From the sequence record NC_041917.1: a stretch of 64,000 bases of DNA. One strand, 5' to 3'. The position numbers and the translations under genes were made by a program. How positions within the stretch are numbered: the first letter of the stretch is position 1; the number at the start of each line of letters is the position of its first letter. This document shows positions 2,268-62,609 of this stretch, piece by piece. The notes under the pieces are model-generated. The model worked only from the letters and a program-made list of their open reading frames with translations, was not told where the DNA came from and did no database searches.

Positions 2268-5200
2268 ATGTATATAGATGGATATATGGATAGAAAACGT
2301 ACTGGTGAAGTTCTGCATGTGGCTGAACGTGTCAATGGTCAACGTATCTTACGTGAAATTGAACCAGTTTACGAGTATTATGTAGAATCACCATATGGTA
2401 CATTTAAAACAATCAACGGAACCTTAGCTGAACGTTTTGAATTTACTAGATATTCCGAAATGAAGAAACAAATGGATACATTACCTAGTACTGCACAGAT
2501 TTTTGAAGCAGATTGTAATGTTACATTCAAAACATTAGCTAAACACTATATGGGTAAGTCATCACCTGATTTGAATATCGTATTTTTCGATATTGAAACG
2601 GACTTTCACCCAAAGTTCGGCTATGCGTCACCTAGTGATCCTTTCAATAGAGTTACTGCAATTTCATTATATCAAAGCTGGACAGGTAAGGATTATGTAC
2701 TTACTATGGCACCATCCGAGATGGAAATTGTAGAAGCACAAGATATTATCAACCGCTTGAATGCAGAAACAGATGATCCGAATAGTACTGTAGTACTTTA
2801 TACTGATGAATGTGAAATGTTCTCAGATTTCTTCGATTTGATTGAAGATTCTGATGTTTTATCTGGTTGGAACAGTGAGTTTTATGATATTCCTTATATG
2901 GTAAACCGAACTCGTAAATTGTTTAATGAAGCAACTCTTGCTCGTTGGTGTTTATGGAATCGTAAACCAAATCCTCGTGAAGCAGATATGTTTGGTAAAA
3001 CAATTGTAACTTATGATTTAGTAGGTCGCGTACATTTGGATTACCTAGCACTATACAAAAAACATGCTGGTCAAGTAGAACAATCATATAAATTGGATTA
3101 TATCGCAGAAAAAGTCACTGGTGAAAACAAAGTAGCATATGATGGGTCTTTGGATAAATTATATCGTGAAGATTATCTAAGATTTCTACGTTATTCCAAA
3201 CAGGATAGTATTCTTCTAAAGAAAATTGATGATAAGATGGATTTCATCAACCTACACAATCGATTAGCTCATAAAGAGTGTGTTCTAATAAGTACCACAA
3301 TGGGTTCTGTAGCACTAATTGATACTGCAATCATCAATCTAGCTCATAAACGCGGTGAAGTAGTATTCAACAAGCGTAAACTTGACGATGATGAAGATGA
3401 TTTCGATTATCAAGAGTATGAAATGGATTATGAAGATGAAGATGAAGACAATGATGAACCAAAAGCAGGTTCTAAAGCAGCAGGTGCATGGGTTCAAGAT
3501 CCAGTACTTGGTTTAATCGACTTCTTAGGCTGTGTAGACTTCAACTCACTATATCCAACAGTTCTACGTGCATTAGGTATGAGTACTGAATGTATTCTTG
3601 GTCAATTGCGTCAAACATATACAGATGCATATCTTGCTGAACGTATTGAAGAACAACGTATGAAATATCGTGGAAAAGGTCGATTTGAGCCTAAATGGAC
3701 TGAAGCATGGCATGGTTTATTTGCAAGTGTTGAATTTACTATGGTTCGTGAAAAATCAGATGGTATAATTACTGTTGATTTAGAAGATGGTTCATCATTC
3801 CAAGCAACTGGTGCAGAACTATATGATATTATCTATGGTGAAGGTAGTACTATAGTACTAAGTGCGAACGGAACGTTATTTGATAAGACAAAGTACGGTG
3901 TTATTCCAGAAATTCTTACAATTTGGTATTCTGAACGTAAAGCACAACAAAAAATGGTTATTGACTATAAGCATCTTGCAACAGATGGATGGGAATTAGC
4001 TGAAGAAATCGTTTCAGAATTGGAAGAAGCGTTGAAATCACTACAATATGGTGATAAAATTCACAAAACCAACTTACATGAGGATGATCCAGTATATCTA
4101 ATTCGCTTAGCACTAGCGAAGGGTGATATTGAAGGAACAGCAAAACTTATTGCTGAAAATGGTATGCGTTTTGAAGGTGGTAAGGTATTTGCACCTGAAA
4201 GTGATAAAAAATACTGTAAAACACAGTCTGCATTCTGGAAACAGAACCAACAGATTCGTAAAATTCTTCTAAACTCACTATACGGTGCTTTGTTGAATAA
4301 AGGTTCTCGTTTCTTCGACAAACGTCTAGGACAATCAGTAACGTTAACTGGTCGTAGTATGACTAAACACCTTGCAAGTAAGATAAATGAAGTATGTACT
4401 GAAACTTATGATCATAGTGGTGGTGTTGTAGTATATGGTGATACCGACTCAGTGTATTTTAGTGTAGCACACTATTATAAAGAGAATGATATACCGTTTG
4501 ACATGTCCAAAGAAGAAGTAATTGAACTATATCAGATGATTGGTGATACCGTAGGTGCATCATTCCCTTCATTTATGGATGAAACCTTTAATACTGGTAT
4601 TGATAATGGTAAGATTGTGGGAGCAGACTTAGAAATGGTTGGTTCTCGTGGATTATTCTTGAAAAAGAAACGTTATGCTATCCTAAAATATTGGGAAGAT
4701 GGATTCCGTTTAGATGTTGATGGAAAACCTGGTAAGGTTAAAGCGATGGGTCTTGAGATTAAACGTTCTGATACACCAAAATATATTCAAAACTTCCTAG
4801 AAGATACACTTACTGCATTACTTGTTGGTGCAGAGGAAGAAGAATTACGTGCTAAGGTTCGTGAATTCAAGAAACTATTCAAAGATCGTCCATCATTTGA
4901 GAAAGGTCAACCTAAAACAGTTAAAAATTATTCTAATAAGTTTAAAGAATATGAAGAAACTGGTCAATGTAGGGTAGGACACGTTCTTGCAGCAATACAA
5001 TGGAACAAATTGCGTACCATTTATGATGATATGTCAGTTCCAGAAGCTACTGACGGTACTAAAGTTATCGTTTGTAAGTTAAAACCAAACCCATATGGTA
5101 TTAAATCCGTTGGTTATCCAATAGATTGTACTGAATACTTACCTGAGTGGTTCTTATCATTGCCATTTGATGATGATGATATGGAAAAAGCCGTTCTTAC

Positions 5201-5300
5201 TAAGAAATTAGGTAACATTTTTGGTATTTTGGATATGGATTTGGCAATAAATGAAAAAAGTTCCATCGAATTGAACACTGGTTTCTTTGCATGGAGTTAA
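2268..5300 (+). CDS. 43: Family B DNA polymerase (gp43-like)
   Basis: ExoI FDIETD, ExoII GWNSEFYD, motif A DFNSLYP, motif B KILLNSLYG, motif C YGDTDS, KKRYA. Confidence 0.97.
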   Translation: MYIDGYMDRKRTGEVLHVAERVNGQRILREIEPVYEYYVESPYGTFKTINGTLAERFEFTRYSEMKKQMDTLPSTAQIFEADCNVTFKTLAKHYMGKSSPDLNIVFFDIETDFHPKFGYASPSDPFNRVTAISLYQSWTGKDYVLTMAPSEMEIVEAQDIINRLNAETDDPNSTVVLYTDECEMFSDFFDLIEDSDVLSGWNSEFYDIPYMVNRTRKLFNEATLARWCLWNRKPNPREADMFGKTIVTYDLVGRVHLDYLALYKKHAGQVEQSYKLDYIAEKVTGENKVAYDGSLDKLYREDYLRFLRYSKQDSILLKKIDDKMDFINLHNRLAHKECVLISTTMGSVALIDTAIINLAHKRGEVVFNKRKLDDDEDDFDYQEYEMDYEDEDEDNDEPKAGSKAAGAWVQDPVLGLIDFLGCVDFNSLYPTVLRALGMSTECILGQLRQTYTDAYLAERIEEQRMKYRGKGRFEPKWTEAWHGLFASVEFTMVREKSDGIITVDLEDGSSFQATGAELYDIIYGEGSTIVLSANGTLFDKTKYGVIPEILTIWYSERKAQQKMVIDYKHLATDGWELAEEIVSELEEALKSLQYGDKIHKTNLHEDDPVYLIRLALAKGDIEGTAKLIAENGMRFEGGKVFAPESDKKYCKTQSAFWKQNQQIRKILLNSLYGALLNKGSRFFDKRLGQSVTLTGRSMTKHLASKINEVCTETYDHSGGVVVYGDTDSVYFSVAHYYKENDIPFDMSKEEVIELYQMIGDTVGASFPSFMDETFNTGIDNGKIVGADLEMVGSRGLFLKKKRYAILKYWEDGFRLDVDGKPGKVKAMGLEIKRSDTPKYIQNFLEDTLTALLVGAEEEELRAKVREFKKLFKDRPSFEKGQPKTVKNYSNKFKEYEETGQCRVGHVLAAIQWNKLRTIYDDMSVPEATDGTKVIVCKLKPNPYGIKSVGYPIDCTEYLPEWFLSLPFDDDDMEKAVLTKKLGNIFGILDMDLAINEKSSIELNTGFFAWS

Positions 5301-5313
5301 AAAGGAAATATAT

Positions 5314-5778
5314 ATGACCAATGAAGTAAGCATTTATCAGCGTATTGGAGAAGCCATTGCTTCTAAGGGATTGTACAATATTATTAGAGCTACAACACCT
5401 GATGAAGAAACAATTCTCGAAGATTCTGGTTTTATCAAAGTTGGTTCAATTAAAGAGGGTGGTGTTATCACCTCTCTTTACAAAATTGAACTAAAAGAGA
5501 AAGAAGTTATCAAAATTGTAGAAGTACCAAAGATTAGTTCACCACCTTGGGGAAATCAACCAATTGATACTTCTCCGTGGAATAACAAACCTTATATCAT
5601 GTACACAAATGGTACTGGTGATGCGGAATGGTTAAAAAATCTTTATACTAATAGCAAATCAGATAACTATACTGCTAATTATATGGGTTCTGATATTAAA
5701 TCTAATTCATTAGTTGGTGAAGTTGTGAACGTATTGAATTCTATTGAAAAAAATACAAAAGCTTGTAGAAATATTTAA
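5314..5778 (+). CDS. Hypothetical protein
   Basis: ORF with an AAGGA SD before ATG 5314; no recognised motif. Confidence 0.6.
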   Translation: MTNEVSIYQRIGEAIASKGLYNIIRATTPDEETILEDSGFIKVGSIKEGGVITSLYKIELKEKEVIKIVEVPKISSPPWGNQPIDTSPWNNKPYIMYTNGTGDAEWLKNLYTNSKSDNYTANYMGSDIKSNSLVGEVVNVLNSIEKNTKACRNI

Positions 5779-5795
5779 AAAAATATTTAAAAATA

Positions 5796-5824
5796 TGAAA
5801 CGTATACGAATTATATGGTATAAT
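5796..5824 (+). promoter_or_regulatory. Putative middle-type promoter TGAAAC-N17-TATAAT
   Basis: Matches the repeated consensus; overlapped by an inverted repeat ACGTATACGA/TCGTATACGT. Confidence 0.75.
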
Positions 5825-5855
5825 CGTATACGTAAACAACATGGAGAATTAACAA

Positions 5856-6587
5856 ATGGAATTACGTGACGTACTACGCGACCTAGTAACTACTACGGCA
5901 GGAATTGATTTTGATTGTATCGCTATTTCAAGCGAAGATCGTGGTCAAGGCCAAAGAATTTACATGGAAGCTTATACAAGTGATAAAAACCTAGTAATGC
6001 GAGCCGTTACTAAAGAAGATGTATCTGAAGTTGTTGGTCGTTTTGGTATTGGTAATCTTGGAATGCTTCAAGGTCTATTGAACCTAAATGTCTACAAATC
6101 AGACAGTACTAAAATTAGTGTGAATGCAAAAGATGGCGTTGTTAAAAGTCTATCCTTTACTTCAGACGATGCAAATACCAACTATCTAGTAGTTGCAGAG
6201 AAATTTATTCCACCTCAACCGCGTTTTACTGACCAACCATATGACGTACAGGTTACACCTAGTGCATCAAAGGTCAATGAACTAAAAAGCTTCTCAGGCG
6301 TGTTTAAATCTTTTACTGCTCACGTTACCCCTTATACTGAGGATAACAGCTTATACTTCTACGTAGGTGAAAAGAATAAAAACAACCATACTGGTACTTT
6401 ACTATTCTCTAAGACAGATGGCGATCTAACTCAGGGTTATGGTTATCCAATTGAACGTGTTCTTCAAGCATTGAATCGTGTAAACAATGCTGAACAAAAA
6501 TCTCTTGGTATTACAAAAACTGGTATGTTAAATGTAACTGTTGATACTGGTATTGCAGTTTATAGCATCTACGTAAGTGGTTGCTAA
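5856..6587 (+). CDS. 45: DNA polymerase sliding clamp (gp45-like)
   Basis: 243 aa with alternating alpha/beta pattern and an N-terminus MELRDVLRDLV like clamp homologs of this phage group; replication context with gp44 at 58891. Confidence 0.6.
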   Translation: MELRDVLRDLVTTTAGIDFDCIAISSEDRGQGQRIYMEAYTSDKNLVMRAVTKEDVSEVVGRFGIGNLGMLQGLLNLNVYKSDSTKISVNAKDGVVKSLSFTSDDANTNYLVVAEKFIPPQPRFTDQPYDVQVTPSASKVNELKSFSGVFKSFTAHVTPYTEDNSLYFYVGEKNKNNHTGTLLFSKTDGDLTQGYGYPIERVLQALNRVNNAEQKSLGITKTGMLNVTVDTGIAVYSIYVSGC

Positions 6588-6593
6588 TTAAAT

Positions 6594-6617
6594 TGGGGGA
6601 ATGTTCCCCCATTTTTT
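6594..6617 (+). terminator. Rho-independent terminator
   Basis: TGGGGGA-ATGT-TCCCCCA followed by T6. Confidence 0.7.
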
Positions 6618-6631
6618 ATTTGGAAAAGAAA

Positions 6632-7246
6632 ATGAGTACACCAAGATTTATTGCTGATACCCACATGGGACACAAAAATATTTGGAAGTACAGACCTGTA
6701 TTCGAAAGTACTCTACATAATGATTTGTATTTTCAGTACATTCTATCTGAAGTCTGTACAAAAAGAGATACTATGTTCTTCTTAGGAGACATTCTATTTG
6801 ATGAAAAGTATCTTCCATTTATTAAAGAACTTCCTGGTACAAAAATTTTAGTACTTGGAAACCACTGTACTGAAATGATTAGTGCTTCAAAGTTGTGCGA
6901 GGCTTTTGATGAAGTACATGCCATGATTCGATATAAAGAATTTTGGTTAACCCACGCACCGTTGCATGTTGATGAGTTGCGTATGAAAAAGAATATTCAT
7001 GGACATGTTCACACTGAATCAGTTAATGATTTAAATTATCTTAATGTATCAGTTGATAGCTCGTTTATGAACTTTTTCCCTAGAACATTGTTCGAAGTTC
7101 GACAAGCTTTTGAGACAGTAAATAAAGAACAAAAGATTTTTGCTGGTGTTGATAATGCTGATGCGTTAAGTGTTATTGAAAGTAATTCTATTGCTAAAGA
7201 TGCATACTACAAGGCACTTGCAGAATCTCGAAAAATTACTGTTTAA
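6632..7246 (+). CDS. Calcineurin-like metallophosphoesterase
   Basis: Motifs ADTHMGH, LGD, LGNH, THAP, HGHVH. Confidence 0.88.
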   Translation: MSTPRFIADTHMGHKNIWKYRPVFESTLHNDLYFQYILSEVCTKRDTMFFLGDILFDEKYLPFIKELPGTKILVLGNHCTEMISASKLCEAFDEVHAMIRYKEFWLTHAPLHVDELRMKKNIHGHVHTESVNDLNYLNVSVDSSFMNFFPRTLFEVRQAFETVNKEQKIFAGVDNADALSVIESNSIAKDAYYKALAESRKITV

Positions 7247-7258
7247 AAGGAATGAAAT

Positions 7259-7468
7259 ATGCCACTATATACGTATCGTTGTACAAAAGAAGAATGTACA
7301 CATAGTGTAGAAAAGATTGTAAAAATTGCGGAACGTGAGACAACTGTACTTGATTGTCCAGAATGTGGTACTGAACAAAGTATGCAGTATGAAAGATATA
7401 CCTCTGGTGATAAAGGTAGTAATTTATACTTCAGGGGTAATTGGTTCGCCAATACAGGCGGCTACTAA
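7259..7468 (+). CDS. FmdB-family zinc-ribbon protein
   Basis: MPLYTYRC..C ... CPECG ... FRGNWFANT is the classic FmdB/CxxC signature. Confidence 0.85.
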   Translation: MPLYTYRCTKEECTHSVEKIVKIAERETTVLDCPECGTEQSMQYERYTSGDKGSNLYFRGNWFANTGGY

Positions 7469-7492
7469 AAGTATTTGAATGGAGTCAATACT

Positions 7493-7780
7493 ATGAGTTT
7501 AAGAATGATTAACGATTATGTGCTAATTGCCCTTATCGATAATACGCGAGTAACATCAGGCGGTTTACTATTAACTACTGTTGAACCTCCTTGTACTGGA
7601 ACAGTACTTTCAGTTGGACCAGGACGTTTTCTAGATAATGGTGAACGTGAAGAACATAACCTACAAGTAGGTGACGTTGTTGTTTTTGGAAAATCTTCAC
7701 TAAATACGCCGATAGAAGAAGATAATGTAAAATATTATGTTATGAAAATTGGTGATATATTCGGGAAGAAAAATGACTAA
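7493..7780 (+). CDS. groES: GroES-like co-chaperonin
   Basis: LRMINDYVLI...TSGGLLL...GTVLSVGPG...LQVGDVVVF...VMKIGDIFG aligns with Cpn10. Confidence 0.9.
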   Translation: MSLRMINDYVLIALIDNTRVTSGGLLLTTVEPPCTGTVLSVGPGRFLDNGEREEHNLQVGDVVVFGKSSLNTPIEEDNVKYYVMKIGDIFGKKND

Positions 7781-8498
7781 AAAAATTATACCATTCTGGT
7801 TGTACCCTTCACATTGGGGTCTAAAAGGTCAAGCTAAGGAGCTTGCTGAAATTGATTTTTATTTTGAAGGTGTTGAAGCGGATCTAAAACGTGCAGATAT
7901 TATGTATCTAACTGACTTAGAACGTGAACATGCTAAGAATGAAATTAAATTTAAACACAATGTATTCGATGAACTTGAATACGAATTGAATAAAGTACAA
8001 ATTGATTTTGAAAAAGCGTTAATTCATAAATTAACTGCATCTCAGAAGAAATTGGATTTACAATTGAAGTATGGACGTATCGATGAAAAAACATATGATA
8101 CTGAATCCATTGAGTTAATTCAAGATGAAGATAAAAAATATCTAGCAGCATTGGAGTTCTCATTAAAGTACGGGGATATTACCCAATCTGAATATGATAA
8201 AGAACTTAAAACGCATAATAGAGAGCCTTGGTTTGAATTCAATGTGGACTTTGATGAAAGTGAAAATGACTTAGTAGTCACCTTTGACTATAATGAATAT
8301 TTTTGGAAGAAACTACGTAGTGAGGGTCATCCAGGAACAGATGAACATGAGATCATTGACAATTTTATCAAAGATTGGGGTCGTAAGTTAGCAACAGAAG
8401 ACTATAATGGTGACTTTGACACAAAGTTAACAAGTCTAAACGACGAGATGAATCAAACGACTGGTACTTCTGAAACTGGTTTTAAAGTTTACGAATAA
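7773..8498 (+). CDS. Hypothetical protein
   Basis: Long ORF overlapping the groES stop; normal codon usage. Confidence 0.7.
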   Translation: MTKKIIPFWLYPSHWGLKGQAKELAEIDFYFEGVEADLKRADIMYLTDLEREHAKNEIKFKHNVFDELEYELNKVQIDFEKALIHKLTASQKKLDLQLKYGRIDEKTYDTESIELIQDEDKKYLAALEFSLKYGDITQSEYDKELKTHNREPWFEFNVDFDESENDLVVTFDYNEYFWKKLRSEGHPGTDEHEIIDNFIKDWGRKLATEDYNGDFDTKLTSLNDEMNQTTGTSETGFKVYE

Positions 8499-8531
8499 AA
8501 AAAAAGGAGAACAAATTTGTTCTCCTTTTTT
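8497..8531. terminator. Bidirectional terminator between convergent genes
   Basis: A-tract GGAGAACA-AATT-TGTTCTCC T-tract. Confidence 0.8.
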
Positions 8532-8543
8532 CGTTTTTATATA

Positions 8544-9200
8544 TTATAGTGACAAAGCAGGAATTGTTTTGTACACTTTAATTGCAAAGTTACCAGCAGT
8601 TGCAGCAGTAGCGGAAGAAGCAAGAATCACTTCAGCACCAGTACTGGTTAGCATTGGAACACCAGTTAGATCATCAATTAGTAGACGACCTTCATCGATT
8701 GTACCAGCAGGAACACCTTGGAAAGTTGTAAGGTCTTTATCAAACACGTTTGCACGTTCAACTAGGAATGTCACTACGTTAGCATCAGCTACAGAAGCAG
8801 CACCAGTAACACCAGATGGAGCATTCTTGAAGCCAGATACAGCAACGGCAGCAGCAGTATCAGAAGTTGAAAGAATTACAGCACGTTGTTGAACAATATC
8901 AATAACACGCTTAACGTTAGTTTGTGCAGCATATGCAGCAGTGTAATCTGCTGATAGTGAAGCTGAAACGAATTCAGTACCATCAACACGAACAACCCCT
9001 TTATCATTTAAGAAATCAATGATAACATCTGCATCAGTAGTGTTTAGAAAACGTTGTAGTTCAGTGAAAGATGCAACAGCACCAGTAACTTTAACAACAA
9101 CATCATCAGCACCACCAATTGCGATAGATACTAGGGCGTTTTTACCATAGAAATAACCAAGTACACCAGATTCGGAAAAACCATTAATACGTTCTAACAT
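8544..9200 (-). CDS. Probable virion structural protein (paralog of the next gene)
   Basis: Ala/Val/Thr-rich; shares QRAV-x2-[ST]TS and TFxVERxxV motifs with 9216-9776; SD GGAGGA. Confidence 0.6.
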   Translation of the reverse strand: MLERINGFSESGVLGYFYGKNALVSIAIGGADDVVVKVTGAVASFTELQRFLNTTDADVIIDFLNDKGVVRVDGTEFVSASLSADYTAAYAAQTNVKRVIDIVQQRAVILSTSDTAAAVAVSGFKNAPSGVTGAASVADANVVTFLVERANVFDKDLTTFQGVPAGTIDEGRLLIDDLTGVPMLTSTGAEVILASSATAATAGNFAIKVYKTIPALSL

Positions 9201-9215
9201 ATTTTCGTCCTCCTA

Positions 9216-9776
9216 TTATACTAGTACTGGTAGAGCAGCAAACACTTTAATTGCTACAGCAGCAGCTAGAGCAGCGGAACCGTCTTTCTTCTGGAATACA
9301 CCAGCTTGTGCTAGATTAGTAGCGATTTCAGTAGTAGGATCTACTGTTAGTGCATAAGTAGCACCAGGTTTGTTAACTTGTTTAGTTAGAACATCTTGAC
9401 GTTCAACGATAAAAGTAATACCAAAAGAGTTAGCAGCAAGAGTACCAGCAGAACCGTAAGCGATAACGTTTCCACCAACTGTTCCAAAACCAGAAGCGGT
9501 TGGATCAATAGTATTTGATAGTGCGGAAGTAGTTACTAGTACAGCACGTTGTGCAAGAGCTTGTGCAATGATAAATTGGTTTTTTTCAGCAGCAGATAGT
9601 GCAGTTTGAGCAGCATTATCGCCAGCTTCAGTACCATCAGAAACTACCGCAGTAGTACCGATTTCAACATCTGCTGGTAGAGTAACAACAACAGTTACGA
9701 AACCGTTATTACCACCCCAAAACTCGCGGCTATGATCTGACATGCCATAGTTGCGGTCAAAAGAATTAAGACTCAT
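9216..9776 (-). CDS. Probable virion structural protein
   Basis: SD GGAGA before ATG 9776 and an upstream late-type ATAAATA; paralogous to 8544-9200. Confidence 0.6.
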   Translation of the reverse strand: MSLNSFDRNYGMSDHSREFWGGNNGFVTVVVTLPADVEIGTTAVVSDGTEAGDNAAQTALSAAEKNQFIIAQALAQRAVLVTTSALSNTIDPTASGFGTVGGNVIAYGSAGTLAANSFGITFIVERQDVLTKQVNKPGATYALTVDPTTEIATNLAQAGVFQKKDGSAALAAAVAIKVFAALPVLV

Positions 9777-9829
9777 AAAAAATCTCCTTTGTCTAATTTG
9801 GTGCAGGTACTTGTTGACCTGCTTAATGT

Positions 9830-9836
9830 TATTTAT
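9830..9836 (-). promoter_or_regulatory. T4-like late promoter core ATAAATA
   Basis: Lies about 55 nt upstream of the minus-strand structural gene pair. Confidence 0.55.
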
Positions 9837-9910
9837 CAAATCTTTTGCGTTGATATTAATTACGCAATAAATCTAATCTAATTCTTATATGCAAATATTT
9901 ATTTCTTTAT

Positions 9911-9939
9911 TGGAACCACGCTCTAAAATGTGGTATAAT
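9911..9939 (+). promoter_or_regulatory. Putative middle-type promoter TGGAAC-N17-TATAAT
   Basis: Consensus match upstream of rnh. Confidence 0.75.
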
Positions 9940-9942
9940 TGA

Positions 9943-10955
<1,013 letters not shown>

Positions 10956-10956
<1 letters not shown>

Positions 10957-11456
10957 TGGCAATTCTAAAGATACTAACTGACTATTCGTTTATCGTTGAG
11001 ACTAATACTGGCGAGAAAATGGGAATATTAGTGAATTATGATGAAGGAACCACCGAACGTACTGGAATAGAGTTCTTTAACTCTGATGGGTCGTTTAAAT
11101 TTGATAGTATGTCTGAATTGCAAGAATTGTTAGGTGAAGAATTCACCTATGCTGAAATAGAAGTAACAGATTCAACTAATACTTCTAAAGGATTGGGTGA
11201 TTATCCAATTAATGATACTGATAACATTACTGATATATTGTTTGATGATCCGTTGGGGATTGGAACCTTTAGAAAAAGTGCACGTTCCAAAAAACGTTTT
11301 TATCCAGGATGGTGGATTGTACGTAGTGAAAATGGTTCATATTTGCCTAGATTGACTATAAGTGTAGACATTTACAATGAAAGAAATAATACAGAAGCAC
11401 TATATGGTCCGTTTAAGTCCTATATGGATGTAACATATACACTAAAACAACTATAA
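10956..11456 (+). CDS. Hypothetical protein
   Basis: ORF coupled to rnh by a TAATG overlap. Confidence 0.7.
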
Positions 11457-11463
11457 TGAGTAC

Positions 11464-11489
11464 AGTACTGCATCTTGCAGTACTTTTTA
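11464..11489 (+). terminator. Rho-independent terminator
   Basis: AGTACTGCA-TCT-TGCAGTACT followed by T's. Confidence 0.7.
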
Positions 11490-11499
11490 AGGAAGATTT

Positions 11500-15173
<3,674 letters not shown>

Positions 15174-15190
15174 AATCCCCTTTACTCATG

Positions 15191-15198
15191 TATAAATA
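15191..15198 (+). promoter_or_regulatory. T4 late promoter consensus TATAAATA
   Basis: Exact match upstream of gene 32. Confidence 0.6.
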
Positions 15199-15200
15199 AA

Positions 15201-15229
15201 TGAAACATTATACCAAAATATGGTATAAT
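15201..15229 (+). promoter_or_regulatory. Putative middle-type promoter TGAAAC-N17-TATAAT (gene 32, distal)
   Basis: Consensus match. Confidence 0.75.
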
Positions 15230-15287
15230 ATGAGTAATTCGATAGCACGGCGTGTTATCAAATAAACGTCAGTCATGACGAGAAATA

Positions 15288-15316
15288 TGAAACGTACCGC
15301 AAATTTGTGGTATAAT
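15288..15316 (+). promoter_or_regulatory. Putative middle-type promoter TGAAAC-N17-TATAAT (gene 32, proximal)
   Basis: Consensus match; tandem with 15201. Confidence 0.75.
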
Positions 15317-15397
15317 ATGAGTGTCAGAAGCAGGAAGCTGATGACAAGATAAGCAAATAAACTAAGTAACAAAGAAACAAATGATAAGGAAATCAAA

Positions 15398-16453
15398 ATG
15401 GCAACATTAGCAGAAATTCGTGCTCTATTAAAAGCAGAACAAGACAAAGCAGAAGCAATCAAAAGTGGTACATTCTCAGGCGGTAATGGTCAACCGGATG
15501 CGTTTCTAGCATTCTGGAACATTCCAGAGAATCAAGATTTGAATCTACGTTTTCTACCAGATTCAGATATTAATAACCCTTACTTCTGGCGTGAGCGTGA
15601 GATGATTAATCTTGAGTTCAACGGAATTGTTGGTGGTCACACCGATAAAGTTAAATTACAAGTACCTTGTAATGAAATGTGGGTTCCAAATTCTTGCCCT
15701 GTTCTTACTGAAATTCGTCAGTGGTATAAAGCTGCGAACGAAACTGGTAACGAAGATCTAAAGAAACAAGCATCTAAGTACTGGAAAAAGAAATCTTATC
15801 TATTCCAATGCCTAGTAGCTCCAGGTTCTGTTGAAGTTAAAGATGACAACGCACCTGAAAATCCAATTCGTCGTGTTCTAGTGAACAAAGATTTGTTCGA
15901 AAAGATTAAATCTATTCTAATGAATCCAGACGTTGCTGAACTTCCAACTCATTATCAACATGGACGTGATTTCCGTGTGATTAAGAGTAAGAATGCTGGT
16001 GGTTATAATAACTACGATGCTTCTCAGTTCAAATTCTCTGAGCGTCCACTAAATGAAGACGAACTAGCTGCAATTGAACAGTATGGCTTATTTGATCTAA
16101 GTGAGTTCATGCCAAAACAACCAACTCCAGAAGAACTAAATGCAATCCGTGAGATGTTTGAAGCATCTGCGAATGGTGAAGCATATGATCCTTCACGTTG
16201 GGCTGCATTCTACCGTCCAGCGGGTGTTCAAAAACCAGCAAATACTGGCTCAACCAGTACTACTGAAACCGTAAGTACTCCAGTAGCTAAACCTGCACAA
16301 ACTGTAACTGCTCCAGTACAAACTACTGTAACAGAAACTGTTGTGGCTCAAGAAGCACCAGTTCAAGAAACCGCTACTGCGGCTCCAACTGAGAGTAAGC
16401 AAAAACTTTCTCCAGCAGAACTAGTTGCAAAACTAAAAGCTAAAGGTGGCTAA
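15398..16453 (+). CDS. 32: Single-stranded DNA-binding protein (gp32-like)
   Basis: LRFLPD...F W, CP Zn-site residues (VPCNE...SCPV), YWKKKSY, DFRVIKS...YNNYDASQF, low-complexity C-tail; directly upstream of uvsX. Confidence 0.88.
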   Translation: MATLAEIRALLKAEQDKAEAIKSGTFSGGNGQPDAFLAFWNIPENQDLNLRFLPDSDINNPYFWREREMINLEFNGIVGGHTDKVKLQVPCNEMWVPNSCPVLTEIRQWYKAANETGNEDLKKQASKYWKKKSYLFQCLVAPGSVEVKDDNAPENPIRRVLVNKDLFEKIKSILMNPDVAELPTHYQHGRDFRVIKSKNAGGYNNYDASQFKFSERPLNEDELAAIEQYGLFDLSEFMPKQPTPEELNAIREMFEASANGEAYDPSRWAAFYRPAGVQKPANTGSTSTTETVSTPVAKPAQTVTAPVQTTVTETVVAQEAPVQETATAAPTESKQKLSPAELVAKLKAKGG

Positions 16454-16471
16454 TTAAAGTTGTAAAGAATT

Positions 16472-16496
16472 AAGGGGCTAAGGAACAGCCCCTTTT
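16472..16496 (+). terminator. Rho-independent terminator
   Basis: AAGGGGCT/AGCCCCTT stem followed by TT. Confidence 0.7.
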
Positions 16497-16516
16497 CATT
16501 TCATGGAGAGAATTAT

Positions 16517-17653
16517 ATGAAAAACATTTCTGCGGGTCTAAGTAGTATTATCAAAAACAGTACTGCATCAGTTAAAAAGAATTCTGGTGTAAGCATGGGC
16601 TTCCATGATCCAGACACTTGGATTAGTACTGGTAATCTAGCATTGAACTATCGTATTAGCGGCGATTTTAACAAGGGTATCCCTCTTGGTAAAGTAACTA
16701 TGTTCGCTGGTGAATCTGGTTCAGGCAAATCATTCATTGTATCAGGAAACATTATTCGTGAAGCACAACGTCAAGGTATCTTCGTAGTCTTAATCGACTC
16801 TGAAAACGCACTTGATTCCGATTGGCTACATGCACTTGGTGTAGATACTTCTGAAGACAAATTACTTAAAATGAATATGGGTATGATTGGTGATGTTGCT
16901 AAATTCACTTATGAATTCATTGAAGGGTATCGTAAAGATTATGAAGATGTACCACGTGAAGAACGTCCTAAAGTACTATTCGTAATTGACAGTATCGGTA
17001 TGTTAAACACTGAAATTGCAAATGACCAAATGAAAGCTGGTAATCTTAAAGGTGATATGGGTCACAAGCCTAAACAACTTAAAGCTTACATTACTAACTG
17101 TGTAAACAGTATGGGTGCATTGAATATTGGTATGGTATGTGTAAACCACTCATACGAAAGCCAAGATATGTTCAATCCAGACCCTAAAGTAAGTGGTGGT
17201 TCTGGTCTAGTGTATGCATCTAGTATTCTAGTAGTTATGGGTAAACTAAAACTAAAAGAAGATGAAGATGGTAACAAAACTTCAGAAGTTAATGGTATTC
17301 GTGCTAAGTGTAAAGTTATGAAGACCCGTTATAACAAACCATTTGAAGATGTAGAAATCAAGATTCCTTGGAACGAAGGTATGAATCCTCGTAGCGGATT
17401 ACTTGACATGTTCGAAAAATATGGTTTAATTACTAAATCAGGTAACCGTTTACTATATGTTGATATTGACACTGGTGAACAGATTCTTCAGTACCGTAAG
17501 GATTGGATGAATAATGTAAATTCCTGCTTAGATTTGGTAATGGGACAATTCACACGTCACCCATTGATCTCACACGTTACTGAAGAAGAAAAAGGTGATG
17601 AAGATTTTGGTACAGATATTGAAGTACCAAATACAGAGGTTAATGAGGATTAA
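16517..17653 (+). CDS. uvsX: RecA-like recombinase UvsX
   Basis: ISTGNLALNYRISG, Walker A GESGSGKS, LIDSENA, VIDSIG, KVMKTR. Confidence 0.95.
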   Translation: MKNISAGLSSIIKNSTASVKKNSGVSMGFHDPDTWISTGNLALNYRISGDFNKGIPLGKVTMFAGESGSGKSFIVSGNIIREAQRQGIFVVLIDSENALDSDWLHALGVDTSEDKLLKMNMGMIGDVAKFTYEFIEGYRKDYEDVPREERPKVLFVIDSIGMLNTEIANDQMKAGNLKGDMGHKPKQLKAYITNCVNSMGALNIGMVCVNHSYESQDMFNPDPKVSGGSGLVYASSILVVMGKLKLKEDEDGNKTSEVNGIRAKCKVMKTRYNKPFEDVEIKIPWNEGMNPRSGLLDMFEKYGLITKSGNRLLYVDIDTGEQILQYRKDWMNNVNSCLDLVMGQFTRHPLISHVTEEEKGDEDFGTDIEVPNTEVNED

Positions 17654-17655
17654 TT

Positions 17656-18120
17656 ATGGCAAAGGCATGGCATTGGATTATAAAAGACGATAAAACAAAA
17701 ATCATAGATATGGTTGAGTTTTTCGAAACTGAGTTAGAGGACGCAAGACGTGAGATTAAACAAGTCGGTCTTATCGAATCTATTGCTCAAAAATTGCCAG
17801 CCTACCATGAACAGCGTTTCAGCCAACTACAACAAGTAGAAACAGTTCTCGAAATTCTCGAAATAGAGATGAGACAGCTTGAATCTGAAAAGTTTAAACA
17901 ATTATTAGAGCACTACAAACGTGCTCTTACCAGTTCAGACTGTAAGAAGTATGTTGATGGCGATCCTGATGTGGTAGCGTTGTCACAATTGATAGCTGAT
18001 GTTGCGTATATTCGAAATCAGTTGGCAGGTGTTGTAAAATCATTAGAAATGAAAGCGTTCCAGCTTAATAATATAGTACGTTTACGTACTGCTGGTATAG
18101 AAGACGCTCGAATAGATTAA
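17656..18120 (+). CDS. uvsY: Recombination mediator UvsY
   Basis: Helical; KKYVDGDPDVV...KSLEMKAFQLNNIVRLRTAGIED C-terminal signature; sits between uvsX and uvsW. Confidence 0.8.
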   Translation: MAKAWHWIIKDDKTKIIDMVEFFETELEDARREIKQVGLIESIAQKLPAYHEQRFSQLQQVETVLEILEIEMRQLESEKFKQLLEHYKRALTSSDCKKYVDGDPDVVALSQLIADVAYIRNQLAGVVKSLEMKAFQLNNIVRLRTAGIEDARID

Positions 18121-18123
18121 TTT

Positions 18124-18148
18124 AAGGACGCTTATTGGCGTCCTTTTT
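18124..18148 (+). terminator. Rho-independent terminator
   Basis: AAGGACGC-TTATTG-GCGTCCTT followed by TTT. Confidence 0.75.
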
Positions 18149-18165
18149 GTTTTTTGAGAGAATAT

Positions 18166-19038
18166 ATGACAGAAATTGATAAATTTTTCAATAATGTAAT
18201 GGTATTAGACACTGAAACTACTGGTGTAGATGATAATGCTGACATTATAGAGTTTAGTGCATCATTTCCATTAAGTGCTAATGACACTTTTGAAGAAATG
18301 TTAAACTTTACTACCCGTTACAAACCAACACAAGAAGTTCCGGCTGAAGCATCAGCAATACACTTCATTGTAACTGAAGATTTGAATGATTCACCTTCAT
18401 ATGCTTCGTCTGTTAGTGAATTAGAAGGACTATTCGAAATTAAACAGTACTTTGTAGGACACAATGTGCAGTTCGACCGTCGAATGTTAGTAGAAAATAA
18501 CAAACGAGTTAATCCTGAAGTTAAAGAAGAATTTTTAGATGATAATCGTTGGATTTGTACCTTAAAATTAGCTAAAAAGCTATTTGCTGAAGACCCTGAG
18601 TTTAAAAATCTTACTTTGAGCTATTTGTGGTTCAAATTTGATTTACATAAGACATGTACCCGAAAAATCATACCTCATAGTGCTGAAGATGATGTGTATA
18701 TGTGTTATAAGGTACTTTCACACTTAGTAAATATTGCTGTTGATCGTGGCTTGATTGATTCCAATAAGGAAATTGGTTCACAGGTTGTTGTACTATGTAA
18801 TACTCCAAATATTTTCACAGTTATGCCAATCGGCAAACATAAAGGTATGTTAATGACTGAAGTTCCGATGAATTATATCGAATGGATGATTAACAACAGT
18901 GATATGTTAAATGAAAATATGCCAAACTTTGATGCTGATTTAGCAGCAACATTTATTGCTGAAATAATGTCAAGGCATTCGGCACTATCTAATATTGATA
19001 TGGATATGCATGACGGTCAAGAATATCCGCAAGGATAA
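18166..19038 (+). CDS. DEDDh 3'-5' exonuclease (DnaQ/ExoX-like)
   Basis: VLDTETTG, GHNVQFD, HSAEDD; C-terminal MPIGKHKG...VPMNYIEW module. Confidence 0.9.
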   Translation: MTEIDKFFNNVMVLDTETTGVDDNADIIEFSASFPLSANDTFEEMLNFTTRYKPTQEVPAEASAIHFIVTEDLNDSPSYASSVSELEGLFEIKQYFVGHNVQFDRRMLVENNKRVNPEVKEEFLDDNRWICTLKLAKKLFAEDPEFKNLTLSYLWFKFDLHKTCTRKIIPHSAEDDVYMCYKVLSHLVNIAVDRGLIDSNKEIGSQVVVLCNTPNIFTVMPIGKHKGMLMTEVPMNYIEWMINNSDMLNENMPNFDADLAATFIAEIMSRHSALSNIDMDMHDGQEYPQG

Positions 19039-19067
19039 AATGATTTAATAAAAAAAGGAACTCAAGG

Positions 19068-20552
19068 ATGAGTGGAACTTGTAAGTTAATACTTCAAGAT
19101 GAAGTTAACTGTAAATTTGAGGGGCTTGCCCCTAATATTCGACAAGAGATGATTCGTAAAGTATCATTTGTTTTACCTTATGCGAAATTCACACCAGCAG
19201 GAAGAATGGGACGTTGGGATGGTAAAGTAAACTTTATGAATATCGGTGGTAGTACTTACTATCATATGTTAGATCAATTACTACCGATTCTTGAAAAACA
19301 TAATATCATGATTGAAATTGATGATCAACGTATTGAACATGATTTTGTATTCGATGCAATTGATGAAAATATTTTTGATTATGTTGAATTCCCTGCTGGA
19401 CACCATATGGAAGGACAAAAGATAGTTCTTCGTGAGCATCAGGTAAATGCAGTAAACACTTGCTTGCAGAACCGACATGGTTTACTATTGGCAAGTACTA
19501 GCTCCGGTAAAACATTAATTACTGCTGCAATGTCAAAAAGTGTTGAAAAGTATGGTAGAAGTATAGTTATCGTACCAAATAAAGATTTAGTACAACAAAC
19601 ATATAATGACTATGCAATGGTTGGTTTAGATGCAGGTGTATTTTATGGTGATAAAAAAGAATTAAACCATCAACATACTATTACTACATGGCAATCATTA
19701 AACTCCCTATGGAAGAAAACTAAGAAAGGTGAAATTGCTCTAACTGAGCAGGACATTAGTGACTTTATTAGTGGAGTTGTTGCAGTTGTTGTAGATGAAG
19801 CACATACGAGTGCAGCAGAAGCACTACATGCAGTACTTGGACAAGTAATGAAAAATATTCCTTTACGTTGGGGCTTGACTGGTACGATTCCTAAAGATCC
19901 AGTACTAGCAGCTAAGATTAAATGTAATGTAGGGGAGATTATCTATACAATATCTGCAAAAGAGTTGCAAGATAAACAAATTCTTAGTACTTGTAATGTC
20001 AATTGCATTAGATTAAAAAGTTCTCTAAAATTTGGTAATTACCAAGAAGAATTGAAGTATCTTGTTACTGACCGTGATAGAATGAAGTATATCGCATCTT
20101 TAATAGCTGCTATAGCTGAATCGGGAAACACATTAGTACTAGTTGATAGATTAGAAGCTGGTGAATTATTATGTGAATTCTTAGGAATACCAAAATCTGA
20201 ATTTGTTAGAGGTGAAACTAAGAAGAAAGACCGTGAAGCGTCTTATGGTGAAATACGATGGGCTGATAATAAGATACTTATTGCAACATATGGTGTAGCA
20301 AGTACTGGTATTAGTATTAGTAGATTATACAATGTAGTACTTATAGAACCTGGAAAAAGTTTTGTAAGAACTATTCAGAGTATAGGTCGTGGACTTCGCC
20401 GTGCAGAAGATAAAGACCATGTGGAGATCTATGATATTTCGGGCTTCAATAAGTTTAGTGCTAAGCATTCTCGTGAACGAATGTCGTACTATAAAGAAGT
20501 TCAATACCCTTATCAAGAATTGATTGTTGATAATTGGGAAAATATGGAATGA
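19068..20552 (+). CDS. uvsW: SF2 helicase UvsW
   Basis: LREHQ, STSSGKT, VVDEAH, GLTGT, TGISI, QSIGRGLR. Confidence 0.92.
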   Translation: MSGTCKLILQDEVNCKFEGLAPNIRQEMIRKVSFVLPYAKFTPAGRMGRWDGKVNFMNIGGSTYYHMLDQLLPILEKHNIMIEIDDQRIEHDFVFDAIDENIFDYVEFPAGHHMEGQKIVLREHQVNAVNTCLQNRHGLLLASTSSGKTLITAAMSKSVEKYGRSIVIVPNKDLVQQTYNDYAMVGLDAGVFYGDKKELNHQHTITTWQSLNSLWKKTKKGEIALTEQDISDFISGVVAVVVDEAHTSAAEALHAVLGQVMKNIPLRWGLTGTIPKDPVLAAKIKCNVGEIIYTISAKELQDKQILSTCNVNCIRLKSSLKFGNYQEELKYLVTDRDRMKYIASLIAAIAESGNTLVLVDRLEAGELLCEFLGIPKSEFVRGETKKKDREASYGEIRWADNKILIATYGVASTGISISRLYNVVLIEPGKSFVRTIQSIGRGLRRAEDKDHVEIYDISGFNKFSAKHSRERMSYYKEVQYPYQELIVDNWENME

Positions 20553-20573
20553 AAAGATTTTTTGTGATATAAT
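20545..20573 (+). promoter_or_regulatory. Putative middle-type promoter TGGAAT-N17-TATAAT
   Basis: Consensus match overlapping the end of uvsW. Confidence 0.7.
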
Positions 20574-20606
20574 ATAGACAGAACAAAATAAAAAGGATAT
20601 TTTGAA

Positions 20607-24408: not shown

Positions 24409-24449
24409 AGGACTTCCATAAATATTGTATAAAATGATAAATTATATAT

Positions 24450-24457: not shown

Positions 24458-24468
24458 GAGGTTAAAAC

Positions 24469-37392: not shown

Positions 37393-37395
37393 TAT

Positions 37396-61132: not shown

Positions 61133-61815
61133 TGTCTAAGAGAATTTATGAACGTGCATTAAGACCACTAGTACTAAAAGATTTAGTACACCCTATCATC
61201 AGTGTTGATGAATATACACCAAAAATTGATGATGATAATATCGTAGTATTATTTCAAGTACTAGATAATTTCGATGCTGCTTATGACCTAAGTTCATTTA
61301 TCGAACGTTCACCAGTTGAAGTAATTGATACTGAAGCTGCTGAAACTCCGAATGTTGATGGACGTTATCAGGTTTTTGTTGAGTTTGAACGAAATGGAGA
61401 ATTCCCTGCAAAATTGATAGATTTAATTAAATCAATCGAAAACATTTGTCCTAATCCAGATTGGAAATTACAAATGTACGGTGTTAATGATCCTATAGAT
61501 TTAGATATTGATAAAATTACTGATGGTATGGAACTCGTTAATGAAGAAGATTTGAAAGAATTTTTTGATTTTGCACCTGTAAATGTAGAAATTTTAAAAG
61601 AATCCATTAAACTTAGAAGTGTATATGGTTCAGAATTGCATTACAGCTTAGGTTCAGGTATAGTTAATGAGAGCTACGTTACTGGTCTTCTAAAAGAAGA
61701 AATGACACTAGATGGCACTCGTTTAAGTGCTGTACTAGGAGAAAACTATGACGTGCTAAGAAGTGGGAAAAACTACATTGTAGGCATCAACGGACGTTAT
61801 ATAGTACTAAGATAA
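61132..61815 (+). CDS. Conserved hypothetical protein
   Basis: Coupled ORF; ISVDEYTPKI...AYDLSSFIE. Confidence 0.7.
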   Translation: MSKRIYERALRPLVLKDLVHPIISVDEYTPKIDDDNIVVLFQVLDNFDAAYDLSSFIERSPVEVIDTEAAETPNVDGRYQVFVEFERNGEFPAKLIDLIKSIENICPNPDWKLQMYGVNDPIDLDIDKITDGMELVNEEDLKEFFDFAPVNVEILKESIKLRSVYGSELHYSLGSGIVNESYVTGLLKEEMTLDGTRLSAVLGENYDVLRSGKNYIVGINGRYIVLR

Positions 61816-62609
61816 TGAAAATATATAATATGTTAATTGCACTACATGAAAGTACTAAAACATCAATACAACAGTATGGTAATGTTGGTTTGAGTAAGCG
61901 TCTATATGTTAGGACGTATGAAATCAACAGAATCGGAAAGAATTATGATGAAGTAAATCGCAATGATGTAAGTACCGAGATGGTTCTCAAAGCATATTTG
62001 GCACGTAAAGTATACATTAATGAAAAATACCTTAGAGGAAGATTTTTAATTGATGAATTTTATGAGCAAGAGGTAGAATTCACTGAAGGTTTATGGAGAA
62101 TATTCTCTATGGAAGTATTCGGTGAACTTCTTCCAGAGTTACCAGTACCTACTACATATAAAGAATTACAACATATATTTGATCATAGTGATATGTATAA
62201 AGAATTCAATTTATACACTACGGTCAAAGAAGCAGTTATTCATAATCAAATAGCTGATTCCGATAAATGTGTTAGTATTAGAGATTTCGATTTATTTTGT
62301 TCATTACCAGGAATTCCTGGTTGGACTTCAGTACAGCATGGTGCAAGCCTTGTTGACGGTCGCACAGAAGCCCCACAAAGGCTACTACAAGCGTGTATGG
62401 GAATGTATAGATATGATTATCTGAAATGCCCTGAACCGTATGAAAACTTCTGGAAAGAACGTGCAGAGGCTGCAATGAAAAAAGCAGTTGCAATTTTGGA
62501 AAGAACGTATATAATAAAATTTAGAAATGCAACGATGTACGGCATGACGCCTGTACCGGAAAGATTTGATCCGGTAACCTCGTTTCATTGGAATATCAAA
62601 AGGACGTGA
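61815..62609 (+). CDS. Hypothetical protein
   Basis: Coupled ORF ending at a terminator. Confidence 0.65.
   Translation: MKIYNMLIALHESTKTSIQQYGNVGLSKRLYVRTYEINRIGKNYDEVNRNDVSTEMVLKAYLARKVYINEKYLRGRFLIDEFYEQEVEFTEGLWRIFSMEVFGELLPELPVPTTYKELQHIFDHSDMYKEFNLYTTVKEAVIHNQIADSDKCVSIRDFDLFCSLPGIPGWTSVQHGASLVDGRTEAPQRLLQACMGMYRYDYLKCPEPYENFWKERAEAAMKKAVAILERTYIIKFRNATMYGMTPVPERFDPVTSFHWNIKRT

Follow-up and report, generated by a model that had tools for sequence, protein, structure and literature searches.

AGTACT as a highly iterated palindrome of Rak2-like jumbo phages

Introduction

Why does a lytic phage genome that has been purged of many short palindromes keep one of them at about a thousand copies? 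The question is raised by a 64,000-base-pair (bp) stretch of the genome of Serratia phage BF (NC_041917.1; 357,154 bp; genus Eneladusvirus), referred to here as 'the window', which is identical to BF positions 186001-250000 and throughout which the palindromic hexamer AGTACT recurs. BF is a Rak2-like jumbo myovirus. The core of its replication and packaging functions is encoded in the window, with genes for DNA polymerase, terminase, a single-strand DNA-binding protein, a UvsX-like recombinase, helicases, primase, ribonucleotide reductase, topoisomerase II, and numerous virion proteins, and nearly all genes are on the plus strand.

Here, we report that AGTACT is a 'highly iterated palindrome' of Rak2-like jumbo phages, that is, a DNA-level motif under selection, and we hold this conclusion with high confidence. 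The motif exceeds chance expectation 7- to 20-fold in BF and its Rak2-like relatives. We also consider it probable, given the bases that flank the motif and its distribution among phages, that AGTACT is read on duplex DNA by a phage-encoded factor with two-fold symmetry. The phenomenon is not mentioned in the papers describing phages CBB, RaK2, or fEgEco12, nor was it found in full-text literature searches.

Sequences and null models

Expected counts were obtained from dinucleotide-preserving shuffles (n = 100), from base composition, from a fourth-order Markov model, and from a within-gene shuffle of synonymous codons that holds the protein sequence and the codon usage of each gene fixed. Open reading frames (ORFs) outside the window were called by us; the same calling recovered 74 of the 80 annotated genes of the window. 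Relatives were represented by 17 loci around the gene for the large terminase (TerL) from the IMG/VR viral contig collection, with TerL identities down to 69 per cent and including Yen9-04, GAP32, CBB, and RaK2. The host contrast is a single 50-kilobase (kb) sample of Escherichia coli K-12, and the length of the BF terminal repeat was derived from that of CBB and from a step in AGTACT density.

Abundance and distribution of AGTACT

The window holds 139 copies of AGTACT, between positions 729 and 63325, against 18.7 ± 4.8 expected from dinucleotide shuffles (the largest shuffled count was 33, and 0 of 100 reached 139) and 21.3 expected from base composition. Among all 4,096 hexamers, AGTACT has the highest z-score, and the other leading words of five to eight letters are its substrings or superstrings. 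Enrichment is nested: 2.4-fold for GTAC, about 4-fold for AGTAC and GTACT, and 7.4-fold for AGTACT. The fourth-order Markov model expects 120 copies because it takes as given the two pentamers, which are themselves enriched about 4-fold. Across the whole BF genome, 1,072 copies stand against about 98 expected.

An initial annotation of the window had described a roughly 10-fold excess between 2400 and 62000, judged against one expected copy per 3 kb. That expectation agrees with base composition, and the strong excess is confirmed, with copies reaching further out on both sides. The fold value applies to the stretch that the annotation had counted (about 11-fold) and falls to 6.5-7.4-fold over the full window. 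Its local counts were also sound: 15 copies lie in 12839-16977, where at least 14 had been noted, and 5 lie in 2401-3600. The start positions are as follows.

Copies 1-70: 729, 1653, 2487, 2784, 2792, 3503, 3582, 3846, 3854, 6105, 6707, 6850, 7603, 8640, 9223, 10297, 10387, 10621, 11464, 11479, 11606, 11851, 12839, 13007, 13547, 13613, 13919, 14123, 14502, 14643, 14954, 15777, 16256, 16274, 16559, 16625, 16972, 18446, 19251, 19494, 19832, 19901, 19986, 20135, 20301, 20336, 20859, 21395, 22019, 22283, 22884, 23194, 23439, 24690, 24884, 25117, 26823, 27135, 27846, 28714, 28773, 29118, 29288, 29948, 30641, 30812, 31190, 31613, 32950, 33181
Remaining copies (139 in all): 33311, 33628, 34030, 34836, 35776, 36153, 36543, 36731, 37552, 38069, 38600, 39328, 40903, 41359, 41761, 41771, 42002, 42085, 42224, 43088, 43286, 43530, 43673, 44080, 44470, 45081, 45558, 46459, 46657, 47077, 47124, 47478, 47625, 47717, 47958, 48251, 49915, 50189, 50699, 51306, 52204, 52592, 52897, 53204, 53357, 53508, 53749, 54204, 54479, 55269, 55989, 56070, 56253, 56459, 57568, 57591, 58249, 58993, 59061, 59566, 59950, 60188, 61170, 61257, 61803, 61851, 62694, 62949, 63320

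Spacing is near Poisson (coefficient of variation 0.89), no gap exceeds 2.5 kb, and close pairs are slightly rarer genome-wide than a Poisson model predicts. The periodicity that the initial annotation had suggested looking for did not appear: there is no significant period at 0.3-60 kb or at 4-30 bp, and the copies are not evenly spaced. Relative to gene starts and stops the profile is flat, without preference for either. Because AGTACT is its own reverse complement, no orientation bias is possible. Two local arrangements of copies are given below; in the second, the presence of AGTACT in both arms had been noted previously and is upheld by the sequence and by RNA folding, which gives a 9-bp stem of -11.7 kcal/mol (z = -3.1) followed by a U-run.

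2784..2797: close pair of AGTACT copies, 8 bp apart, within the gene for DNA polymerase; 3846/3854 and 41761/41771 are comparable pairs
11464..11484, plus strand: intrinsic-terminator hairpin in the interval between gp271 and the first terminase ORF; nine-nucleotide arms AGTACTGCA and TGCAGTACT, each with AGTACT, then a T-run

Codon usage and effects on the proteome

As the initial annotation had perceived, copies within genes occur in more than one frame. All three are used, as AGT-ACT (Ser-Thr), as xxA-GTA-CTx (Val-Leu), and as xAG-TAC-Txx, with 67, 53, and 17 copies, respectively; 3 further copies are intergenic. The same annotation had reasoned that an excess caused by codon or codon-pair preferences should vanish once these are controlled. 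It does not vanish: genes contain 137 copies against 34.9 ± 4.9 after synonymous-codon shuffling, and every frame is in excess (67 versus 19.6 for AGT-ACT, 53 versus 12.4 for xxA-GTA-CTx, and 17 versus 2.9 for xAG-TAC-Txx). The order of codons matters as well. In the window, Ser-Thr is written AGT-ACT in 67 of 113 cases, versus 4 of 78 cases of Thr-Ser written ACT-AGT; Val-Leu is written GTA-CTx in 77 of 139 cases, versus 27 of 108 cases of Leu-Val with the codons reversed. Non-coding DNA of the BF genome, as delimited by our own ORF calls, is at least as dense in AGTACT as coding DNA (4.1 versus 2.8 copies per kb), and the unannotated first 1.7 kb of the genome carries 15 copies. Codon or codon-pair bias as the cause is thus ruled out by the codon shuffle, the dependence on codon order, and the enrichment of non-coding DNA.

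Genome-wide, the peptide contexts compatible with the motif are realised as AGTACT in 60, 57, and 40 per cent of cases in the three frames. Dipeptides of the BF proteome deviate from expectation in the same sense: Ser-Thr occurs at 1.57 times and Val-Leu at 1.35 times the expected frequency, with the reversed dipeptides Thr-Ser and Leu-Val at 1.02 and 0.92 times. Selection for AGTACT is strong enough to fill about half of the synonymously accessible positions and to raise the frequencies of Ser-Thr and Val-Leu; the DNA motif has measurably reshaped BF protein sequences.

A trait of the phage lineage

AGTACT is the top palindrome in 17 of the 17 TerL loci, with 36-59 copies per 21 kb against 5-8 expected. 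It is also the top palindrome of Xanthomonas phage XaC1 (123 copies versus 16 expected) and of Asteriusvirus BF17 (73 versus 10.5). T4-like controls have no excess, as seen in Serratia phage Muldoon (7 versus 7.1) and in RB68 (5 versus 4.8). The phages with the excess infect Serratia, Yersinia, Cronobacter, Pectobacterium, Klebsiella, Escherichia, and Xanthomonas. They form an isolated clade, with TerL identities of at least 60 per cent within it and below 31 per cent to the next relatives. Since the excess tracks this Rak2-like clade across different hosts and is absent from the T4-like controls, it is a trait of the phage lineage rather than of the host. A host-specific cause is ruled out by the same excess across seven host genera and by its absence from T4-like phages of Serratia and E. 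coli; a prophage origin is ruled out by the lack of any match in E. coli genomes.

Individual sites are conserved between related phages 2-4 times as often as control hexamers. Around the terminase gene, BF shares 31 of 51 sites (61 per cent) with CBB, compared with 30 per cent of control hexamers (p = 7e-6). The shared fraction is 61 per cent for GAP32 as well, with controls at 28-30 per cent for these two phages (p about 1e-6). The corresponding values are 67 versus 42 per cent for Yen9-04 and 20 versus 11 per cent for RaK2. In the terminal repeat, 57 of 163 sites (35 per cent) are shared between BF and CBB, versus 8.2 per cent of controls (p = 1e-21), at a nucleotide identity of 64 per cent. 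As AGTACT totals are equal in the two genomes compared, lost sites have been replaced. Selection, or a drive, acts both on individual sites and on overall density.

Recognition features

The bases adjoining the motif are biased in mirror-symmetric fashion. C precedes AGTACT 1.78 times as often as expected and G 0.43 times; G follows 1.5 times as often and C 0.36 times, and non-coding DNA behaves alike. Among eight-letter words, CAGTACTG occurs 72 times and GAGTACTC 5 times, the latter being the least enriched of the palindromic 8-mers. One-letter variants that keep the GTAC core and differ at an outer position are enriched 2.4- to 2.9-fold, and those differing at inner positions about 0.4- to 1.7-fold, in general close to 1. 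Mirror-symmetric flanks within asymmetric coding sequence indicate that an agent with two-fold symmetry reads double-stranded DNA, and not that AGTACT is an RNA or peptide signal. The partial enrichment of variants with the GTAC core also speaks for such a reader, which would be encoded by the phage clade because the hosts differ while the motif stays the same.

Past one flanking base on each side, no sequence conservation was found around AGTACT, so that dispersed repeats and mobile mini-elements are ruled out. Very-short-patch repair or deamination would leave one-letter variants depleted, and this signature was not seen (AGTATT 55 versus 34 expected; AATACT 44 versus 37). The nucleoid-occlusion factor SlmA binds GTGAGTACTCAC, which has AGTACT at its centre, a G before and a C after it, and GT...AC as outer bases. 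This site is ruled out because its required flanks are those disfavoured here.

The initial annotation's proposal of positive selection at the DNA level is therefore borne out by several lines of evidence: codon control, codon order, the three reading frames, non-coding DNA, the mirror-symmetric flanks, the conserved positions, and the clade-wide excess that is absent from T4-like controls. The functions it listed (a target of a DNA-binding, nucleoid, or packaging protein, or of a methyltransferase or self-recognition system) are candidates. The maximum in the terminal repeat, the association with early promoters, and the parallel with cyanobacterial HIP1, described below, did not figure in it.

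The terminal repeat and its early promoters

Along the BF genome, AGTACT is densest over roughly the initial 25 kb (6.5 copies per kb). Its density drops to about 4 per kb across the 30 kb that flank this block on each side and to about 2 per kb in mid-genome, and the window sits at the minimum. The maximum coincides with the terminal repeat. The direct terminal repeat of CBB is annotated at 1-22,456 (PMC5259590), and its AGTACT density is 6.4 per kb. That of fEgEco12, 20,993 bp long, has been confirmed experimentally (PMC13070987); it contains 6.6 copies per kb, and the density falls abruptly at its edge, to 2.3 per kb over the following 29 kb. A step down at the edge of the repeat is seen in BF and CBB as well. 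Terminal repeats of 21-22 kb hold about 140 copies each, against 7 expected. Past the fEgEco12 repeat, at 22500-25000 and 30000-37500, AGTACT-free islands lie in arrays of ORFs of about 70 codons, and may be recently acquired or fast-turnover gene arrays in which the motif has not yet accumulated.

Each terminal repeat carries about 20 strong, near-consensus early promoters of the sigma-70 type, conserved between BF (1345-19519) and fEgEco12 (1658-20075) and hence across two genera. Their architecture consists of aaaAGTAC running directly into TTGCAa, a gap of 9-10 nucleotides, often a second AGTACT, then g/t, TATAAT, and gttttacatcga, so that the paired AGTACT sites lie 21 bp apart, either side of the -35 box. 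All of these promoters are directed inward from the left end, as would be expected if transcription helps to draw the genome into the cell. The window contains a sole example of this architecture.

62694..62735, plus strand: sigma-70-like promoter 5' of gp335, with AGTAC running into TTGACA, a 17-nucleotide spacer, and TAAAAT (BF 248694/248699 = window 62694/62699)

A general promoter or operator element is ruled out by the flat profile at gene starts and stops and by the promoters outside the repeat, of which 3 in 38 carry the motif.

The recombination signal Chi (GCTGGTGG) of the enterobacterial hosts is also clustered in the terminal repeat, predominantly in one orientation: 6 plus-strand and 0 minus-strand copies in BF (6669-17964), 7 and 2 in CBB (9311-21027), and 10 and 2 in fEgEco12 (590-19632), where about 0.1 per repeat is expected. 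The BF copies lie in three different reading frames, and the orientation would be active for RecBCD coming in from the right genome end. This oriented cluster shows the repeat to be shaped by the processing of DNA ends.

Purged palindromes and the absence of GCGC

Lytic phages tend to deplete palindromes, as the initial annotation stated, and BF conforms: 32 of the 64 palindromic hexamers are missing from the window and 26 of 64 from the whole genome. Across the genome, GATATC occurs once against 104 expected and CTTAAG 0 times against 91, and GGTACC and CGTACG have 0 copies despite their GTAC core. GAATTC, AAGCTT, and CATATG are not avoided, which makes for a specific avoidance profile that lends itself to matching against host restriction enzymes.

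The tetramer GCGC is absent from all 357 kb of BF (about 217 copies expected) and from every Rak2-like locus checked, including XaC1, BF17, CBB 1-50 kb, and fEgEco12 1-50 kb; it is present at normal frequency in the T4-like controls. Avoidance this complete, whatever the host, may be due to a nuclease specific for GCGC that the phages encode, or else to a host enzyme of very wide distribution. The E. coli K-12 sample has 6.8 GCGC and 0.06 AGTACT per kb; the AGTACT density of the phage, about 3 per kb overall, is about 50-100 times that of the sample. Rak2-like phages may conceivably use a two-way density code, which we regard as speculative and on balance unlikely: AGTACT would be a positive 'self' tag, read by a phage protein and perhaps methylated, and GCGC a 'non-self' tag and possible target of a phage nuclease. 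If so, phage enzymes could protect, recombine, transcribe, and package their own DNA and destroy host DNA without modified bases, and the code would give the phenomenon of highly iterated palindromes (HIPs) a tractable experimental model.

Candidate writers and a working model

A search for a methyltransferase or DNA-binding protein, as the initial annotation had recommended, yielded three DNA methyltransferases in BF, one of them clade-wide, and no DNA-binding candidate in limited domain scans. The first, gp151, belongs to the N6_N4 family, and its nearest solved relative is the N4-cytosine enzyme M.PvuII; a homology search with it returned no informative names. It is confined to the subclade of BF, Yen9, CBB, GAP32, and XbC2 and missing from Rak2, Asteriusvirus, and XaC1. 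The second, gp129, is confined to Eneladusvirus. Neither can be the universal writer, since the AGTACT excess persists in members of the clade that lack these enzymes. The third, gp063, is of the Dam family (PF05869), and its homologues are found clade-wide (34 Escherichia, 11 Klebsiella, and 8 Erwinia records, equal in number to those from the TerL search for these genera), which makes it the sole clade-wide candidate writer. Modification by 7-deazaguanine is ruled out, since the annotated 'GTP cyclohydrolase', gp169 (BF 95949-96455), appears to be misnamed and is a NADAR-domain protein instead.

In our working model, AGTACT sites would mark DNA in cis as 'self' through their density, probably in a form methylated by gp063, and so separate phage DNA (about 3 copies per kb, 6.5 in the terminal repeat) from host DNA (0.06 per kb in the E. 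coli sample). The tag would govern the fate of DNA at or near the ends. It would determine how the terminal repeats are protected, resected, and recombined, and whether the early promoters there, whose -35 box lies between two sites, fire or are shut off. Methylated HIP1 behaves in this way when cyanobacteria are transformed. We propose this model because of the precedent of HIP1, because AGTACT is densest in the terminal repeat, and because host Chi sites cluster there in one orientation. The specific proposal, in which the self tag is methylated and controls both end processing and early-promoter activity, is a tentative one that we ourselves doubt. The combination of a selected AGTACT, a symmetric phage reader, and a density-coded self tag is to us the best explanation as a whole, and we put it forward as plausible and insecure.

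Several points weigh against this explanation. Members of PF05869 are usually linked to GATC. Limited domain scans of ten terminal-repeat proteins and the neighbours of gp063 found no DNA-binding domain and hence no reader. The total avoidance of GGTACC and CGTACG argues against blanket protective methylation of GTAC. The peak in the terminal repeat could come partly from weaker protein constraint: occupancy of possible sites increases there only from about 0.5 to 0.66, and the remainder of the increase is due to more compatible contexts and more non-coding DNA. Most promoters outside the repeat lack the motif, with 3 of 38 carrying it. AGTAC may have spread in the repeat promoter family by descent through duplication and not for its function. 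From sequence alone, selection and a repair or recombination drive are inseparable. Finally, ten restriction enzymes cut fEgEco12 DNA normally (PMC13070987), so that this DNA is not globally modified.

Alternative explanations

The strongest competitor, to which we give a real but minor chance, dispenses with methylation and assumes an abundant architectural or regulatory phage protein, either a 'phage nucleoid' protein or a global repressor coating the chromosome at about 1,000 sites, that would bind the two sites 21 bp apart at the repeat early promoters and so switch them on or off. Recognition by a dimer according to affinity fits the mirror-symmetric flanks and the graded enrichment of half-correct sites. 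The fixed positions in about 20 promoters per genome in two genera also speak for such a protein, and near-Poisson spacing with slightly few close pairs suits coverage rather than discrete operators. It is harder to reconcile with the domain scans described above, with the promoters outside the repeat that lack the motif, and with the indifference of AGTACT to gene starts and ends.

Molecular drive without function is less probable still. Here, biased mismatch repair or gene conversion would turn near-sites into AGTACT, most strongly where recombination is most frequent, i.e. in the two-copy terminal repeat, and the step-like peak in that repeat is what this would produce. A ratchet of methyl-directed repair has been proposed by Elhai for HIP sequences, and the one-letter deviants of AGTACT lie mostly at the first and last letters, as they do for HIP1 (Elhai 2015, PMC4390886). 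The AGTACT-free islands next to the fEgEco12 repeat likewise look as if new DNA had not yet been converted. Against a drive, one-off variants are not depleted, and no gene like MutS, MutL, MutH, or Vsr is found among the BF annotations. The tolerated cost to the proteome also counts against it, as does positional conservation within and between genes, which argues for selection as it did for HIP1 (Xu, Lawrence, and Durand 2018, PMC5861425).

It seems improbable to us that AGTACT is a palindromic analogue of Chi, serving the resection and recombination machinery of the phage (a T4 gp46/47-like complex, or helicases). It would halt degradation and load recombinase from either direction, promoting concatemers and recombination-dependent replication from the repeats. 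To our knowledge, T4-like recombination systems have no sequence-regulated nuclease; known Chi sites are asymmetric, and the fixed promoter positions are left unexplained. In its favour are the highest density at the genome ends, the co-localisation with a single-orientation cluster of genuine host Chi, and the properties that AGTACT shares with Chi, being over-represented, conserved, and located in core genes. HIP1, moreover, has been reported to act 'in a manner reminiscent of a Chi site' (bioRxiv 10.1101/2024.09.10.611283).

We see very little prospect for a preferred site of action of a T4-type primase (starting on both strands) or of a phage type II topoisomerase (cleaving A^GTAC with a 4-bp stagger). 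The window has genes for the two enzymes (gp288/289 and gp322/323), two-fold symmetry and a 4-bp core suit a type IIA topoisomerase, and one site per 330 bp suits lagging-strand priming. Primases, however, need only three nucleotides, the consensus of type II topoisomerases is weak, and neither the terminal-repeat peak nor the promoter positions would be explained.

Lastly, it is hardly credible that bias in codons, codon pairs, or oligonucleotides produces the AGTACT excess as an artefact, or that AGTACT is the site of a host protein such as SlmA: GTA, ACT, and AGT are favoured codons and the fourth-order Markov model almost reproduces the count, but codon control leaves 35 of the 137 genic copies expected, the reversed codon order is not enriched, non-coding DNA is, T4-like phages of the same hosts and of similar guanine-plus-cytosine content lack the excess, and Xanthomonas phages have it.

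Comparison with known systems

The closest parallel is found in cyanobacteria, in HIP1 (GCGATCGC) and alternate HIPs (Elhai 2015, PMC4390886; Xu, Lawrence, and Durand 2018, PMC5861425). Functional leads for HIP1 include methylation-dependent effects on incoming DNA and recombination (Kamoku and Nielsen 2024, bioRxiv 10.1101/2024.09.10.611283); it may also serve as a signal for DNA uptake (PMC13756078). HIP1 and AGTACT are both short perfect palindromes in large excess (15- to 300-fold and 7- to 20-fold, respectively), reaching up to one per few hundred bp; they occur between genes and, in several frames, within them; their positions are conserved between genomes, which argues for selection; and their one-letter deviants fall mainly at the first and last letters. 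HIP1 is accompanied by an orphan methyltransferase conserved in the lineage, for which gp063 is the candidate counterpart by distribution only. The differences are also clear. AGTACT has 6 bp, is AT-rich, and belongs to a lytic phage clade, whereas HIP1 has 8 bp, is GC-rich, and belongs to cellular genomes. HIP1 is periodic at 10-90 kb (Xu, Lawrence, and Durand 2018), unlike AGTACT, which has no kb-scale period. Only AGTACT has a sharp maximum in a terminal repeat and is incorporated in early promoters, and the nested GATC and CGATCG of HIP1 have no counterpart in it. AGTACT is a phage counterpart of cyanobacterial HIPs.

Other systems resemble AGTACT in part. Chi of the enterobacteria is likewise over-represented, located mainly in core genes, selected for density, and tied to the processing of DNA ends, but it is asymmetric, orientation-dependent, and read by host RecBCD, whereas AGTACT is palindromic, about 10 times denser, and host-independent. 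DNA uptake sequences (DUS of Neisseria and uptake signal sequences [USS] of Haemophilus) can be maintained by transmission bias. They share with AGTACT a copy number of about 1,000-2,000 per genome, an influence on peptide composition, and the occurrence of some copies as inverted pairs that form terminators (cf. 11464-11484). They differ in being non-palindromic 9- to 12-mers whose reader belongs to the competence pilus, and lytic phages do not take up DNA in this way. ScaI restriction-modification is directed at the identical hexamer, and the BF subclade has an M.PvuII-related methyltransferase. Restriction sites, however, are avoided or neutral in phages, and AGTACT is enriched 11-fold; no cognate nuclease was found, and the N4-cytosine-type methyltransferase is missing from most of the clade.

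Remarks on annotation

Two further observations concern the gene annotations. The product gp213 (BF 124325-125665), named 'HNH endonuclease', matches DUF2201 metallopeptidase-like and VWA-like domains, and the name looks wrong. The large terminase is annotated as two overlapping ORFs, and in GAP32 and several metagenomic relatives the homologous match spans about 2.3 kb rather than 1.6 kb. Some lineages may therefore carry an intron, an intein, or a homing-endonuclease gene inserted here.

11500-12210 and 12200-13846: the two overlapping large terminase ORFs of the window

Significance

A single palindrome kept at about 1,000 copies, at a cost to protein sequence and in a genome otherwise purged of palindromes, points to a strong and so far undescribed chromosomal function. 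Practical consequences follow for work with these phages. AGTACT abundance is a simple signature by which Rak2-like phages can be recognised in metagenomes; ScaI would cut their DNA to very small fragments unless AGTACT is modified; and the motif matters for recoding or synthesis of these phages, which are candidates for therapy. HIP1, the only comparable case, has gone unexplained for three decades, and the question of HIPs could become directly testable in a lytic phage that completes its cycle in 30 minutes and has a defined terminal repeat and few candidate genes.

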